64,000 bases of DNA from Paragordius varius (lineage: Eukaryota > Animalia > Nematomorpha), in contig OZ176055.1 in NCBI GenBank assembly GCA_964247055.1, positions 4,340,001 through 4,404,000 on the forward strand. Reading direction: 5' to 3'. The notes below the pieces were generated by a model. It saw nothing but the letters and a program-made list of their open reading frames with translations. It searched no databases and had not been told where the DNA came from. A program made the translations under genes and the position numbers. Of this stretch, positions 30,555-50,314 are shown in pieces. Each line of letters begins with the position of its first letter. Within the stretch, counting starts at the first letter, position 1.

Positions 30555-33500
30555 TCATTTATAATCGCCTTGTGCCTTAAGCTGCTCTGGTGTTTTAGAT
30601 TTTTGGTTTATAATGACTTTTTCGGAAGTTTTTTCTGATTTAACAGGTGAATTTTCCACATAGGGATTGATTTCTTTCGTAGGGGAAGATGGTGTAAAAG
30701 GATCCAATCTAAACAGTACATAATTATTTATTTCAATCCATAATATAAAGTTGGTTTTTGTTAATTAAAACTACTTTGTGGTATTAGCGTACGATAAAAA
30801 TATCCCAAGCAAAATAAAATGCTCATGCATAGGACAAAAAAAGTACGAATAGGATTGAAACTGAAAAAGTTATAGAACTTAAGTTATAAATCAAATAATT
30901 GGAAAAACTATTCATAACCTCATCCATGAACGATCCTCCGACTAAATTTTACTGAAACGCTTATACAATTACCAACATTTTAATTATGCCAATTAATTGT
31001 AAAAAGCGGGGCTTCGAACGGGAACCGGGGTTTCTATGATTTTAAGAGTAACCGGTTCCGTTGAGTTGCAACCACCCCGGTTTCGGTTCCACCTTTCCCC
31101 AATAGTTCTGGTAAAAAGTTATAAAATTTTTGTCCTGAAGCATCTAGTTTGTAAATATATACAGCAATATATATAATGTCTAAAATAACACCATATTATA
31201 ATTAAATATTAAAGGTTTCGATCGTTATTTAGAGTCAAAACCACATGGAGTCGCACAAACACATGAATGAACATATTTTAAGAATCAGTAAATATTAGTA
31301 TTATTATTGATGGGCATATATGTGCAAAATATGTGAATAAAATTGGCTTAATTATAAGAAGGCAGCCTAATTATGTTCATCGCAATAATAAAAATTATTT
31401 ATGCGCATAAAAACATGAAAAATGGGGGAAGATAGGAACATCTAAAAAATAGGCTGAACAAAAATATGTTTCAGAGTTTATTATTTAATATATAAGCAGT
31501 CAAATATTTTTTACGAAATGTTTTACATAGTCCATTATAAAAACTCTTTTTAAAAACACTTTCTTGCAATAATTCACTATATGAAAGTTGATTTAAATAA
31601 AATATGATTATCAAAAACATATATTAAATTACAAAGCTCTAAAATGTATAGTTTTGAAAGTTCCGGACTCTAAATTTAGATGGCATCCAAACCCATCTAA
31701 AACAAACAGCTGATCAATAAATATTAAAATTTCTGTCAAAATGCAAACAAAAGCACTTTAAAGTCAATTAATATTACTTGTAACCAAAATATATACTTTG
31801 CCATTTTTCATAACGATTTAAATATTGAAAAAAAAGGAGACAAAATAATTATAATACGGGTATCATATTACATTTTTAAAAATATTTGCTAATGGATATA
31901 AAAAGCCATGGCATTTTAAATCTAGCCCGATATCTTAAGTATATTTTATGATAAACTAGAACTGGTCTAATTTATAATTACCAAAATAATTTATCGATCT
32001 AGATTAGACATTTGATACAATATTTAATTTCATATATCTAATTAACATTATTTATTTAAGTTTAAATTTGCCTCGTAAGGTATTAAAGTTCCGTGTTATT
32101 AAGGAAATTAAATTAGAAACCAGAATCAAACAGAAAATAGAAAAAATTTATATTCAAAGCTTGGCCTTACTTTAAAAAATATCAAATAGATTTTATTAAA
32201 CTGATTTTCAAAAAATTAACATTGGCTAAAGAATCGACAAAAAGCTCAAAACACCAATAATTTATTTACCTGCTCGTGTTTCTAGATACCGTTTCAGATG
32301 AGGACAGATAAGTATCACTAGTTGAACTAGAACATTCTTCGGTTTCATTGGCTGAATGAATGGTCGGATCGGGACTTTTAGATAGGGGCGAATGATTAAT
32401 ATCACTTTTTGTCGGCATACCGCTATCAAATCGAGCTAAATTCCTTTTTGAAGCCATATCATAGTTGGGTAAATGACCGTCACCCCTTATATTTGCATGT
32501 GCAGTATTATCATTTGGATACTTTGAGGTTTTATGGATCATCAACATTTTTTTCCCAATGTCCGCTTGGTGACTTTTGTCTTTTGCGTCGTTGACATCTA
32601 GGTCGGAATAATAATGTTTTTCATTCAAAGAGGTGTTACTGTTTGTCGTGGTTGAACTACTACTAGGGGTACTTACATTACTACTATAACTACTGTAATT
32701 ACTTATGTCAATAATTTCTCCAATACTTCCTCCTCGTGTTAAATTTTTTGAATCCATAGGACTTAACATATTGTCCAGTTTTGTTGTTCTCTTGCCCTTT
32801 GTACCATTAAAATTTTTGTAATTGCCATTTTTGTTTGCATTGTTTTCGTCGATTGAATTTCTTTTCGGTTTAACTCGACGTCGTTTACGTTGAAGAAGGG
32901 ATAGAATCCATAATTCTTTGCCTAAACCGTCTTGAAATTCTCTGTTTTCTTGTGAAGATTTCCTACCATTTTTTGCATTGGAATCGTTGTTTTGATCAGA
33001 GGGTGTTGTTTCATATCCTTTATAGCGATACAAGTAAATTAATATGATAGCTAGGATCATTGTTGATGCCCCCAAAGTTCCAACTATACCAACAACCCGT
33101 AAAAGATTAAGCCTTCGATTATACAAAATGGCATCTTTATCAATGCCTATTGTATTATGCGCTAAGCGTATTGTTTCACTTTCCATGTTATCAACACCAT
33201 CTCGTTTGGCATGAGAATCAATGTACCTAGTTAATGCAGAATCAAAATCAGTTTTATTCGTCGTTTCTTTTAATGCATTATATTGCATTTCAAGGGATAT
33301 TACAGGGGCGGGTTCATACATTACTCTGTGATTTTGGGCAACGCCAAACGCATATATAATGATACAAATACCAGCTAAAAAAATGAGCGATAAGACAATT
33401 ATCATATACTGAAACCAAGTGAAATCTATCATGAAATCATTTGTGCCATTTTTACCTATTTTTCCCGATGAAGGTGGTGGTGTATCAAATTTAAATTTGG

Positions 33501-33927
33501 TATTTTGCATTGATTGATAATTTTTATTCATGATTTCGTCCGTGAAATAGCCATTGTTTCTAGCGATTGACTTTTTGGAAGCGTTGCTTGATAATTTATT
33601 TGTTGTAGCTAAGTCGGAATTTTTGTAACTGTTTAACTGTTCAAAATTATCTTTTGCGTTAATGGTTTTGCGATTTGCGTTACTTGATAAGGTTGTTGGA
33701 TGATTGACTAGATGTTTGGAATCACTATCTTGCTGAGAAAATTGATTTGTAGGGTGTTGTCTCTTCTGAAGCTCATAAAAATTATGAAGATGTGATCGTA
33801 TCCCATAGTGAGGTGATAAAATTTTCGGATATTTTTCTTTGGAAATATTTTGTTCCCAAGGCGTCTCAGAATCACTATAATAATCTATAGGATGTGGAAT
33901 TAAATTAGCTGTATCATGTGTGGCCAT
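30555..33927 (-). CDS. Two-TM membrane protein, neurensin/TMEM74-like core with long Ser/Thr/Asn-rich tails (~600 aa, 2 coding exons)
   Basis: Exon 1 is 32270-33927 with TM1 WFQYMIIVLSLIFLAGICIIIYAFGV and TM2 LRVVGIVGTLGASTMILAIILIYLY, preceded by IDKDAILYNRRLNLL (compare neurensin VDTHAVQFNSALD). The ORF stop lies inside a donor AG|gtaaat (phase 2) that joins in frame to exon 30555-30708 (LDPFTPSSPTKE...GDYK*). The family call is tentative. Confidence 0.6.
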
Positions 33928-45700: not shown

Positions 45701-47890
45701 AGGGTCATGATGCAGAAAACGACCCGTTTATATTCAAATCTATTATCGGGGAAAATGGGTCACTCTATGTATTAACCTAGATTGTTTGGGTTTAGAGGAA
45801 ACAATCATAGCCCCCATGGTGTTAGACAAATCATAAAGAATTTTTATACCGAAAAAAGCTTTTAAATTAACAACTTTAAAATAAAAATATAAAATTTAGT
45901 AATTACTTGATATAATTTGTTTGAAATGGAAAAATCTGATCTGTTTTTGGAAGTAGCTACGCTTTGTATCTTTAGAAAAGGGTGTTTTAAACCATCTAAA
46001 TTGGCAAAAAGTTTCGATAAATTTTAAAATTTATTAAAATTCAGAGTTAAAATTATAGAAGTTTAAACAGTTAAAAATATATTTTTTATTGGTAAAATGA
46101 TGGTTTTTAATTAACATTATAAAAACGAGAAATGATGCGTTTCAAATAATTAACTCTAACCTCTAGCAGTTATTCGTTTGTTTGGATCTGGTTGTAGGCA
46201 ATGAAGTATCAGGTTTTGCGCTGGAACACTCACATAACTATAATATTTAATAATACGAGTAAAAACGATATACGAAGAGTTTACCCAAAACAGTCACCAC
46301 CAATTACGAAAAGTTAAGCGCATATTTTTAATAACCCTTAAATTAATGGAGTAAAAAACGTAAAAATTTAAAGACAAATATTTTTACAAAGTCAGCTAAC
46401 CTAGGTTGCGATATATGGAATTGAGATGTATATGAATAACATTCATTGTATATTTCACAATTGTAACATCATTGGTATTATGAAAATTAACATTTATAAA
46501 AGTGTGGCTGCCTTTTCAAAAAATATTTTTCTTTTAGTTTTTGTGTTTTGTCTTAATTTTTACACCTTAAATCAAAACGTTTTTCTCTTTTCGTTAAACT
46601 AAATAAAATGTTTCAGGAAATAGCAAATGATTTGAATATGCCATATAAGATTAAAACAAATTAATGTAGAAACTTGGGAATAGTGAAATCGCCCTGAACT
46701 ATTCGGCTAAATGTCGTTTCCACACTATGGGTATCAAATGGGGGTTTCCCGCACACCAAAGTATAAAGAATGCAACCCAAACTCCATATATCCACGCCCA
46801 TTCCATGGGCCCGACTATTTACAGTTTCTCTGGAAAAGTAAATTGTTGAATATAAATATCCCTCATATAATATTTTTCCAATCATAATATTTTACAAATT
46901 TATTTTTATATGCCTTAATAGCGAAAAATATACTAAAAGTATTAAAAAATTGGTGAGTATAATGCAAATAATTTTTTCGTTCGAAAGCATTACAAATTAT
47001 AAATACAAATGGAATATATTTAATATAAATTGAAAAAAATAAGCATAAATAATTCAATGATGTTTTTAATAATATCATAAGGTTAGGATTATTTAAAAAT
47101 GATATATACATTATTATAAGTTTGGAATATTTTTTTCTCATATAAAACGAAATTAAATAGTGTCTTTTAATTTTATAAATTGATATTTTAATTTTGTTCA
47201 AAATAGATAAATAAAATTTTATTTATGCATCAACTAAAATATAAATAAAAAAAATGCGTACGGAGATATAAAGTTGGGTGTTCCGCACATTGTAAAATGC
47301 TTTTCATCTGGTTTTCGAAGCATGATAGAAAGCCCGAAATCAGCAATTTTCTTTAATATATATAAATTAAATATACTATGTTCAATGATTTGCTCAATAA
47401 AATATTTGATACAGTTAAATCACGGTGAATTATGGAATTTGAATGCAAATAGTCAACTCCCTCAAAAATTTGGCGCATAAATAATTTAGCTTGAGATTCA
47501 GAAATACCCTTATAATATTCTTTATGAGTTTCTATATATTGAGATAATTCTCCCGAATGGCATATTTCCAATGAAACATACACATAATTATCATCTTCAA
47601 AACATTCATAAAGCTATATTTATATATTTTTTTACTTTAACAATATTGATATGATTCAATTGAGATTGTATTTTAATTTCATTTTTGACTCTATCTACCA
47701 TATTTTTCGCCCGCATAATTTTTTTATTAATCTGTAATATAAAAAATTCAAAAACCATTTTAAGAGCAATGTCTTGTTGGTTCTTTCGATCAAATGATTT
47801 ATAAACAGTGGCAAAACTTCCTTTACCCAAAACATTAAATAGATCATAATCCTATGCAAATTATTTTTATAAAATTACCTTTAAGCTCAT
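39737..47890 (-). CDS. PLK4: Polo-like kinase 4 (SAK)
   Basis: 12-nt first exon (MSLK), then [17 protein letters not shown]...ALKM|[21 protein letters not shown]...[11 protein letters not shown]...KIADFGLS...[11 protein letters not shown]...[12 protein letters not shown]...PPFDT...HPFL. The DSGHFS degron is at 44286-44303. Polo-box-like exons follow, with a terminal exon at 39737-39928. Confidence 0.9.
43125..43353. mobile_element. TA-flanked palindromic MITE in a PLK4 intron
   Basis: ~100-bp inverted arms starting CAGTCATGTATCCTTT and ending AAAGGATACATGACTG, with TA at 43123-43124 and 43354-43355. Confidence 0.8.
43400..43800 (-). mobile_element. Possible Penelope-like element pLTR fragment with a decayed hammerhead motif
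   Basis: The minus strand reads TAAAGA-GGATAG-TGGATA-CGGTC-GAAA-TGTAG (~43762-43795), a degraded CUGAAGA/stem II/GAAA arrangement, followed by ORF-like debris. Confidence 0.3.
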
Positions 47891-48092
47891 GTCCACATTT
47901 CAAATGTAGCGGTTAGTGACCATATGGCTATACTATTGTTAGTATGCACTAATGATTCAAATGCAACTTGATATGACTTTTTCTGTAAAAAAATTTAAGG
48001 GCAATATCTCTGTTATAACAGTTGTTAAAATCCGTAATTAACGATAAAGGATAATTAAAGAATTAAATGAAATTATAAATAGAAATTATAAA

Positions 48093-48195
48093 CGATATGT
48101 GAAACCCTTCGTCAATAGTAATCGCAGACTAGTTTCGTGCTTGTTAGCACTCATCAGTACGACACAACTATTTGACTTGGGGTTTTCACATATCG
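48093..48195 (-). ncRNA. Minimal type I hammerhead ribozyme motif (intact core)
   Basis: Minus strand: ...UCGUA CUGAUGA GUGCU-AACA-AGCAC GAAA C-UA-GUC UGCGA... It has the catalytic core, a 5-bp stem II, a palindromic minimal stem III (ACUAGU), a GUC cleavage triplet (48129-48127), and stem I UCGUA/UGCGA extended by AUAGU/ACUAU, GUCA/UGAC and a 15-bp outer helix. Confidence 0.8.
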
Positions 48196-48383
48196 ATTTC
48201 GTATATATATCCAACTTTGCAATTTTGGTATAAATGCAGTTGGTTATACGAATTTAAATTAAGAGTTAATTTTCAGTTTATTTTCAAATTTTCAGTTTAA
48301 TTTTTATAAATTACATTAAATTTAATTTAAATTTGTATAACCAACTGATATCAAAATTGCAAAGTTGGATATATATACGAAAT

Positions 48384-48486
48384 CGATATGTGAAAACCCC
48401 AAGTCAAATAGTTGTGTCGTACTGATGAGTGCTAACAAGCACGAAACTAGGTTGCGATTACTATTGACGAAGGGTTTCACATATCG
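48384..48486 (+). ncRNA. Second hammerhead motif (mirror copy, cleavage triplet mutated)
   Basis: CTGATGA at 48422-48428, GTGCT-AACA-AGCAC, GAAAC-TA, then GGT (48450-48452) in place of GTC, which loses the invariant U16.1. Confidence 0.6.
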
Positions 48487-50314
48487 TTTATAATTTCTAT
48501 TTATAATTTTATTTAATTATCCTTTATCGTTATATTACGGATTTTAACAACTGTTATTACAAAACATAACCAATCCGTTAATTACCATTACAATATCTTT
48601 GTTAACCCAAATGCATTAAATTTAAATAAAAACTGAATTGAAACTCACATTACCTTTTATTTTTTTGTAAGCGACTAAAATATAGGGTGCCTTAATACCC
48701 TCGTTATTCTTATAAACACTATGCTAGTGAAAAAGTTTTTTGGTTATAAATTCATTATAAAACCTATCTCTCTTGTATTAGTTTAATTTATCTTTTTTAC
48801 AGTTATTAACTTTTAGAGACCCAAATTTGATATGTCAAAATGGATAACTTTTTGAGTTTTTGAAAGTTGGAATAATTTGCGTATCTTAAAAAGTATTTAA
48901 CAACCATCACCTTTTCACATTATATTTTTTATTCTTTGGGTTAGTTTGAGTTTGAAAGGTTTTTTATTCAAAATATAATTAACTAAAATTGTTATCATGT
49001 AATAGATAAGGTTTAAAATTTTTTATAGTTTTGGGATTTTTGGAGTTTAAAATTGGGACTCCAGAACACAGTTAAAACGCACAGCTGATGGTGAAATAAA
49101 TCAAATTTTTTTGGTAAAATGTATCATGAAAGCTTTTAAAAATTAATTATTTACATTTTCTAATATGCCTGTTACAATAAATATTTAAAAATGCATTACC
49201 TTTAGGGGTAGTTTATCCCAGAGCAATCTATAATTTGTAACTTATAAAGTAATTTAATTAAGCTGAATATAAATATTTAGGCGCATAATACATAAAAAAT
49301 ATATTAATCGTAAAAAAATCTTCAGCTCAAACTTTTTTGCCGTTATCTACATTTTTAAATTATCAATACAGTCATTAAATGATATTATGAAGGTGGATTA
49401 TTAACTTTAAAAAGCTTTTGAGCAGTATTTTACCAACATAAACCAGATATATTTAATTTTGAATATAAGCTGTTCGTTTCAATCGTATTTTGAAGCTGTT
49501 CCAATTTTGGACTCTTAAATTACATAACTGTATAAAATATTAGATACGGAGCAATGCTTTATAAATTAATTAAAATAACTTTCAAAAGAATGGTTAAATA
49601 CAAAAACGAGCTTTGGAATATAAAATTACCTCAATAAGTCTTCACGGACAAAAAAGGCGATGTCTTACTAATTTACAAATTGAAAAAAAGGTGTATATAC
49701 TTTACCGTAAATTTATTGAAAGCTATGCATTTTGATTTTATAATAAAGAAAACGGACTTGGCATAAACAAATTTTTGCATTATATAGAATATTTATTCAT
49801 TGTTGGGCAGTTAAATTGAATTATAAATATGCTTATAACAAATCCAATTCAGTCGAAGATATTGGTAATAGCAAAAAGAGAATGTCTTATTAGGCAATAA
49901 CAATAATTGGATGAATGTCATAATCTAGCATTTGAAATTATTTGCGCATCGGCTCTTATGGTTTTTTTAAAAACAAGTCTATTAGAGGCGGCAAGAATTT
50001 AACAGTTTCGCAGTCTACAAAAATAAAATATTTAAATATCTGAAAAGATAATTACATTAATATGTCTTATTGTTCTTCGTTAAGTGTTAATAATTTGTGA
50101 ACAACATATAAATAATTAAATATGTTTTTGATAATTTAAGAAATATATTGTTCATAAATTCGCGCTTTTATATAATTTATAAGGAAATACACTTTCTATT
50201 ATGTTTGATGATTACTGTATCAAATATTAGTTAGTTCATTATTACATATGTATTAGTTTATGGTTTAAATCCATTAAGATTTTTTTAATTTTTTGTCATT
50301 TTATATTCCTTAAA

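Follow-up and report, generated by a model that had tools for sequence, protein, structure and literature searches.

A hammerhead-bearing palindrome of the nematomorph Paragordius varius as a probable integration by-product of an ORF-less, retrozyme-like family moved by Penelope-like machinery

Animal retrozymes have been proposed to be non-autonomous derivatives of Penelope-like elements (PLEs) (bioRxiv 10.64898/2026.07.22.740005). Many PLE insertions include a 5'-truncated copy in inverted orientation, together with a tail of 30-40 bp at one end (Craig et al. 2021, PMC8557442); the tail, also described in PMC11167929, has been published as unique to PLEs. With a purified PLE protein, Frangieh et al. 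(2024, PMC11167929) showed cleavage as well as extension of both DNA strands. In the hammerhead ribozyme (HHR) of the canonical metazoan type I, 6 bp of helix I lead to an internal loop (UAC), helix II measures 4-5 bp, and helix III has 1-2 bp closed by a small palindromic loop (PMC4209133); dimers of this form cleave well, monomers poorly (PMC4209133, PMC7229834). In 2014 Cervera and de la Pena already reported dual HHRs that lie on opposite strands at distances of 100-700 bp (PMC4209133). Here we describe such a pair in a 64,000-nucleotide stretch of the P. varius genome (contig OZ176055.1, positions 4,340,001 to 4,404,000, forward strand), referred to as the window, to which all coordinates given without a prefix belong. 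Window positions 48016-48590 form a head-to-head inverted duplication with one type I HHR per arm, each with a 2-bp palindromic helix III (ACUAGU). The locus is best read as a single retrotransposition event of a hammerhead family lacking open reading frames (ORFs), integrated in trans by PLE machinery, a reading to which we assign a probability of about 0.85.

An inverted-repeat search of the window revealed a main arm pair at 48061-48231 and 48348-48518 that is 98% complementary, continued collinearly by two outer pairs of repeats (48011-48038 with 48534-48561, and 48039-48062 with 48509-48532) and by an inner pair (48237-48262 with 48322-48347). Global alignment of the two arms gave 230 matches, 4 substitutions and 4 indel events, and the exact 29-nt HHR core CTGATGAGTGCTAACAAGCACGAAACTAG occurs in the window twice, at 48157-48129 on the minus strand and at 48422-48450 on the plus strand, where 0 occurrences are expected by chance. 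A palindrome with a hammerhead in each arm, as claimed in the original prediction, was thus recovered by repeat search, arm alignment and core positions. The two arms had been placed at 48011-48561; the palindrome is real, and the arms are not equal, the right one reaching about 48590, 34 nt past that end. The arms were placed on a reference unit of 455 bp (L019:1482-1936), to which the left arm aligned over unit positions 73-334 at 96.6% in a minus-strand BLAST high-scoring segment pair (HSP); features are collected in Table 1. The asymmetry of the outer ends is 36 by unit coordinates, which equals 34 nt in the window. The flanking target-site duplication (TSD) reads CAATATCT[C/T]TGTTA when both copies are merged with their single mismatch, and its boundary can be placed to within about 5 nt, since TGTTA and CAATATC are also similar to element sequence (microhomology). 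This copy has no tandem part, and its coding capacity is limited to one 52-aa ORF (48322-48480, minus strand) across the HHR hairpin.

The same layout was found throughout the 110.5-Mb assembly (44 contigs), in which the HHR core occurs 208 times with at most 2 mismatches (97 forward, 111 reverse) and the reversed control not once. Within the first 100 cores of the list there are 17 head-to-head (-,+) pairs less than 1 kb apart, 4 same-strand tandem neighbours and 0 tail-to-tail (+,-) pairs. Head-to-head is therefore the commonest paired arrangement (17/21 close neighbour pairs), which removes the special status that the original prediction had implied for the palindrome. The spacing of the paired cores varies from 189 to 636 bp and the inner junction differs from locus to locus. 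Thirteen inverted loci, the window copy included, were examined in detail. An exact TSD of 12-18 bp lies at the outer boundaries in 12 of the 13 (14 bp in the inverted copy of L004, 2.5 Mb downstream), the window copy matching at 13/14. After removal of the TSD, one outer end fell at unit 304-334 (mostly 327-334) and the other at 346-368 (mostly 361-368) in all 13 loci, so that every one is asymmetric, by 18-59 bp with a median of 34. This gap of about 34 bp matches the published PLE tail, which would reflect two reverse transcriptase (RT) start sites. These results indicate that the palindrome is an integration by-product, a known footprint of Penelope-like integration, and not a special two-ribozyme device.

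The extent of the family was determined by BLAST, the method suggested with the original prediction for copy number and layouts. A 551-bp query returned 144 pieces, most covering one arm only, and this search, together with the cores, brought out both tandems and inverted pairs. Twenty loci were mapped onto the unit, of about 150 or more. Head-to-tail tandems were seen in L014 (444 bp x 2.4 copies) and L019 (period 455 bp), with one type I HHR per unit; solo 5'-truncated copies also exist, and instead of long arrays the family consists mostly of dispersed 1-2.4-mers that have an inverted arm. The similarity between copies is 92-98%. In the HHR, 16/1537 positions have changed as against 256/10549 for unit 20-330, a span that includes the HHR, which makes it 2.3 to 2.5 times less variable than the remainder of the unit. 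The family is ORF-less, retrozyme-like, young and small. The earlier description of the locus as a PLE/retrozyme-like unit that is non-coding and inverted-duplicated, and whose 2-bp helix III is palindromic, is supported. In six loci (L001, L002, L003, L011, L018 and L025) the copies share a 5' end at unit position 19-20, directly 3' of a G+C-rich hairpin, CTAGG...CCTAG; this shared end could be a transcription start or a site at which the reverse transcriptase stalls.

The hammerhead motifs were analyzed with a descriptor that asks for helix I (6 bp), the core, helix II with G10.1-C11.1 as its closing pair, the GAAA, a helix III that is short, and U16.1 and H17. In the 64-kb window it matched the minus-strand copy only, and 0 matches were obtained in 200 shuffles. 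This copy consists of helix I GUCGUA/UGCGAU, core CUGAUGA, helix II GUGCU-AACA-AGCAC, GAAA, helix III C-UA-G and GUC; the core is followed by UC, leading to A15.1-C-UA-G-U16.1-C17, and the predicted cut is 3' of C17 at 48127, the next base being at unit position about 217. Helix I has 6 bp, including 2 G-U pairs; helix II has 5 bp with the loop AACA and helix III 2 bp with the loop UA. All catalytic-core positions are present (C3 U4 G5 A6 N7 G8 A9, G12 A13 A14, the A15.1-U16.1 pair and H17), as are the three helices around them, of which II has G10.1-C11.1 as closing pair, III is likewise closed and I is open. In the plus-strand copy the A15.1-U16.1 pair is broken by the G at 16.1. Core context and descriptor thus bear out the original prediction of an intact minus copy with GUC, cut 3' of 48127, and a plus copy mutated at the cleavage triplet; the 5 bp given there for the stem I pairing have to be corrected to 6. 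Each HHR lies inside a 103-nt hairpin with an outer helix of 15-18 bp, and none of 200 shuffles folded as well.

A comparison with the Rfam hammerhead models, also suggested earlier, gave sub-threshold matches. Hammerhead_HH9 matched the minus copy with 26.7 bits (E = 2e-4, 48117-48168) and the plus copy with 21.9 bits, both below its gathering score of 52, which is a model threshold and not a biochemical criterion. In the HH9 alignment the score is lost in the helix III with its 2-nt loop and in the outer part of helix I, and the core, helix II and the UAC internal loop align well. Judged by its sequence, the motif is closer to the canonical metazoan type I HHR of non-LTR (long terminal repeat) retrozymes than to the 'min-HHR' of PLE pseudo-LTRs (pLTRs) in PMC4209133. 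Positions 16.2, 16.1 and 17 were hit by 3 independent mutation events with 4 changed bases in 35 copies (window 48451-48452, L002 and L007). The clustering at these three cleavage-site bases may be due to chance or to a hot spot at the cleavage/ligation junction; the count is small (16 changes in the whole 43-nt HHR).

Table 1. Coordinates of the palindrome, its hammerhead motifs, a resident Penelope-like element and the neighbouring genes
Feature	Position	Strand	Remarks
Target-site duplication, left copy	48002..48015	.	CAATATCTCTGTTA; 13/14 positions shared with 48591-48604
Inverted, 5'-truncated arm	48016..48262	-	unit ~329 down to 73 of the 455-bp unit; outer end is the 'short' terminus, without tail
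Direct arm	48263..48590	+	unit ~20 to 365; plus-strand BLAST HSP 20-371
Palindrome 'loop', 59 nt	48263-48321	+	extra 5' sequence of the right arm
'Tail', 34-nt one-sided 3' extension	48557..48590	+	on the direct arm only
Target-site duplication, right copy	48591..48604	.	CAATATCTTTGTTA; 13/14 positions shared with the left copy
Intact type I hammerhead, 43 nt	48121..48163	-	descriptor match; identical to family consensus
Mutated hammerhead copy	48416..48458	+	U16.1 to G (48451), C17 to U (48452); fails descriptor; A15.1-U16.1 pair broken
Hairpin enclosing the hammerhead (extended helix I/outer helix)	48093..48195	-	RNAfold -42.7 kcal/mol, z = -7.7
Apparently intact autonomous PLE	L035:5238-8551 (G000:C1:4914237-4917550)		787-aa RT+GIY-YIG ORF, no stops
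Protein-kinase gene	46661-47860 (Pkinase exons)	-	left of the element
SulP/SLC26-like gene	from ~50315	+	right of the element

What the ribozymes could do was considered from predicted folds. For a read-through transcript of either strand, 220-236 arm-to-arm pairs and -350 to -366 kcal/mol were obtained, and such a transcript is predicted to fold as a hairpin of about 240 bp that buries the HHR, in favour of the original suggestion of one long double-stranded RNA sequestering the ribozyme. The suggestion that the two mirror-image ribozymes act together as a dimer was not supported. Since the motifs are on opposite strands, one transcript contains a single sense HHR beside the other in antisense, so that no dimer can form within one molecule; in the plus-strand read-through RNA the sense HHR is the mutated copy. 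For the intact minus-strand HHR to fold, transcription would, according to the model, have to begin within the element and proceed outward, and a second RNA would be needed as partner. The competent monomer fold has -9.8 kcal/mol versus -12.8 for a misfold in which C3-G5 pair with CUAG, and an intermolecular ACUAGU helix contributes about -4.8 kcal/mol. The minimum free energy structure found by RNAcofold for two 52-nt cores is not the double-hammerhead, and only the energies of its parts were compared because that topology cannot be written without a pseudoknot. Self-cleavage in this family probably depends on the pairing of two sense copies, which may lie in one tandem transcript or on two RNAs. 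At the window locus itself both ribozymes would be bystanders, one mutated at 16.1 and 17 and the other buried in the predicted read-through duplex.

Machinery of the required type is resident in the genome. A search for GIY-YIG gave seven matches at E <= 0.001, all above the Pfam cut-off, and a PLE protein query gave 59 RT matches from several families, many of them as adjacent (-)/(+) pairs; several resident PLE families show the same head-to-head layout. The apparently intact PLE of Table 1 (L035) has a pLTR-like direct repeat of 133 bp and, upstream, an inverted truncated copy with arms of 544 nt at 94%. Database homologues of its ORF, at 31-35% identity, are from arthropods, Hydra and Trichuris and carry PF00078 and PF01541; its identity as a PLE protein is based on the GIY-YIG genome match, on motifs read by eye and on the domains of these homologues. 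An RT fragment found beside the L024 copy of the hammerhead family was rejected as a separate decayed element, since it lies outside the TSD of that copy.

The anatomy of the insertion, its family, the TSDs, the tail asymmetry and the resident PLEs, all observed here, are the basis of the following proposal, in which we infer the palindrome-forming steps from published PLE biochemistry; the RT doing the work, ribozyme activity, dimer dependence and circular RNA are inferred as well. A GIY-YIG endonuclease would make a staggered double-strand cut, the origin of the 14-bp TSD, and both exposed 3' ends would prime reverse transcription on the element RNA. One RT start would be internal, near unit 330; the second, near 365, would lie about 35 nt closer to the 3' end, and this offset would be the 'tail'. 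Both cDNAs would extend toward the 5' end of the RNA and be joined where they stopped (unit 73 and 20), giving head-to-head arms. The hammerhead, a motif of the canonical metazoan type I whose 2-bp palindromic helix III is unstable, would travel with the element RNA as its cargo; paired sense HHRs would cleave to give monomers that can be circularised, as described for animal retrozymes.

Several observations weigh against this proposal. The HHRs are well below the Rfam gathering thresholds, and no gathering-level match was obtained in the whole window. The TSD of the window copy has one mismatch and overlaps element-like microhomology. Across the HHR and its outer hairpin the family shows 0 compensatory changes and 39 broken pairs, a test that is uninformative because the family is too young. 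The Pfam search of the 787-aa ORF found no significant family. No partner PLE acting in trans was found among about 30 PLE loci examined. None of the about 39 loci fetched with GIY-YIG or PLE-protein queries carries an HHR (for the L035 PLE, by Rfam and regular-expression searches) or shares sequence with the unit: BLAST of the 455-bp unit against these loci gave AT-rich noise and one unrelated nested fragment (L065). Finally, the insertion termini are away from the HHR cut site, so the ends of the integrated copy were not set by the ribozyme; this agrees with the in vitro PLE work, in which HHR cleavage was dispensable for insertion. For the lizard PLE, reads are reported neither to start nor to stop at the cut site.

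The element sits between two divergent genes (Table 1). The kinase gene on its left has a candidate first exon of 4 codons (M-S-L-K; minus strand, ATG at 47890-47888), which a 27-nt GT..AG intron (47878-47852) would separate from the exon with the GxGxxG motif; some splice is required, as an in-frame TAG lies directly upstream of the second exon. Given this candidate exon, the insertion is possibly about 120 bp upstream of the start codon of the kinase.

This position, together with a read-through RNA predicted to be a near-perfect hairpin of about 240 bp, would also suit an exapted hairpin-RNA gene between the two divergent genes, a source of endogenous small interfering RNA or microRNA (miRNA), and Rfam models of long-hairpin miRNAs do match the locus at E = 1e-15. 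The matches occur on both strands and far below gathering (77 versus 230 bits), so that they are attributed to the generic shape of a long hairpin; the plant families concerned (MIR7533 and others, found with relaxed Rfam settings at up to 77 bits against 230) were rejected. As the structure is fully explained as an integration by-product common to many loci, we consider a hairpin-RNA gene very unlikely. A foldback or MITE-type DNA transposon, in which the arms would be terminal inverted repeats for a transposase and the hammerhead incidental, would account for a long inverted repeat flanked by a short direct repeat. It does not account for unequal arms with a different inner junction at every locus, for outer ends asymmetric by about 35 bp, for a TSD length varying from 12 to 18 bp, or for the occurrence of the 455-bp unit as head-to-tail tandems and solo 5'-truncated copies. 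These are the traits of a retroelement and not of a cut-and-paste element, and the transposon explanation is largely refuted.

PLE inverted and tandem structures are known to trouble assemblies (Craig et al., PMC8557442), and a chimeric fold-back long read collapsed into a palindrome was therefore weighed as well; the probability of such an artefact is very low on indirect grounds, given that the arms differ by 4 substitutions and 4 indels, that a TSD brackets the palindrome, and that at least 17 independent loci have the same layout with their own junctions, the 13 examined each having its own TSD. More serious, and still improbable, is an origin by two events, by post-insertion rearrangement or by LINE-style twin priming in place of PLE two-strand priming. 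L1 twin priming is known to give 5' inversions, and no PLE with a matching 3' end was found among the about 39 loci, both of which favour such an origin. Twin priming on one RNA yields adjacent, non-overlapping segments, whereas both arms here cover unit 73-329 and thus overlap. A single TSD brackets both arms, and the count of 0 tail-to-tail versus 17 head-to-head pairs, with a tail in 13/13 loci, points to one stereotyped mechanism that matches the in vitro PLE data. We therefore retain a single retrotransposition event carried out by PLE machinery in trans as the probable origin of the palindrome.

Some observations lie beside this argument. Other HHR families are present in the genome, scoring 32-33 bits with RF00163, just under its gathering score of 34, and these too form head-to-head pairs, for example C5:3207224(-)/3207593(+), C4:786579(-)/786995(+) and C5:11946728(-)/11947169(+); a rough first-look count of candidates runs into thousands. 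A 119-nt hairpin at L024:1837-1955 that matched Rfam MIR868 (E = 4e-4) is not a miRNA gene, being the inner junction of another head-to-head insertion. Elsewhere in the window, a 553-aa ORF at 32266-33927 on the minus strand had no detectable homologue among 5.8 billion proteins, and its sole Pfam match was weak and sub-threshold (Neurensin).

The window locus itself is of little consequence, as an integration by-product in which one ribozyme is dead and the other probably sequestered. The counts at family level support the views that PLEs may mobilise animal hammerhead retrozymes and that, during PLE integration, priming may occur on both strands of the DNA at two neighbouring internal sites of the RNA. 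A more ambitious interpretation, which we offer as a doubtful conjecture, is that the pairing of a short with a tailed terminus in 13/13 loci is the first in vivo, family-wide footprint of two-strand priming from two start sites, hitherto known only in vitro for one lizard PLE, and that retrozyme-like RNAs in this animal are copied in trans by a PLE with which they share no sequence. If this were true, a corollary would be that dozens of palindromes are ready-made hairpin-RNA loci able to feed small-RNA silencing of the family. Being young and small, the family would be a convenient model for trans-mobilisation by PLEs and for dimer-dependent hammerhead processing.

Among described systems, the non-LTR retrozymes of animals (Cervera & de la Pena 2020, PMC7229834; Li, Clavereau & Pollet 2026, 10.64898/2026.07.22.740005) resemble the family in being ORF-less and AT-rich with a tandem unit of 150-450 bp, in having one type I HHR per unit (helix I of 6 bp, helix II of 4-5 bp, helix III short and palindromic), and in their TSDs of more than 4 bp and proposed dependence on PLEs. 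The unit described here, at 455 bp, is at or just above the upper size limit, and its copies are mostly dispersed short multimers with an inverted arm instead of long arrays. Xenopus families, moreover, have a sequence link to the pLTR of a resident PLE, whereas none was found here among the about 39 loci.

PLE insertions (PMC8557442, PMC11167929) share with the family the inverted 5'-truncated copy abutting a direct copy, partial pLTR-like tandems, a tail of 30-40 bp at one end, a variable TSD length and an HHR in the repeated part. On the other hand, the family is without an RT/endonuclease ORF, and its HHR is of the canonical metazoan type, whereas in the 'min-HHR' of PLEs helix II is long, helix I is short and a base is bulged after A9. 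The dimer-dependent type I HHRs of newt and salamander satellite 2 and of Schistosoma Sm-alpha (cited in PMC4209133 and PMC7229834) likewise have a short palindromic helix III, for which reason two motifs must pair to form a stable helix III, and in them, as in the consensus alignment of Rfam HH9, the UAC internal loop follows the first 6 bp of helix I. As read from the DNA, the HHR of P. varius differs from them in its outer hairpin of about 45 bp, an unusually long extension of helix I.

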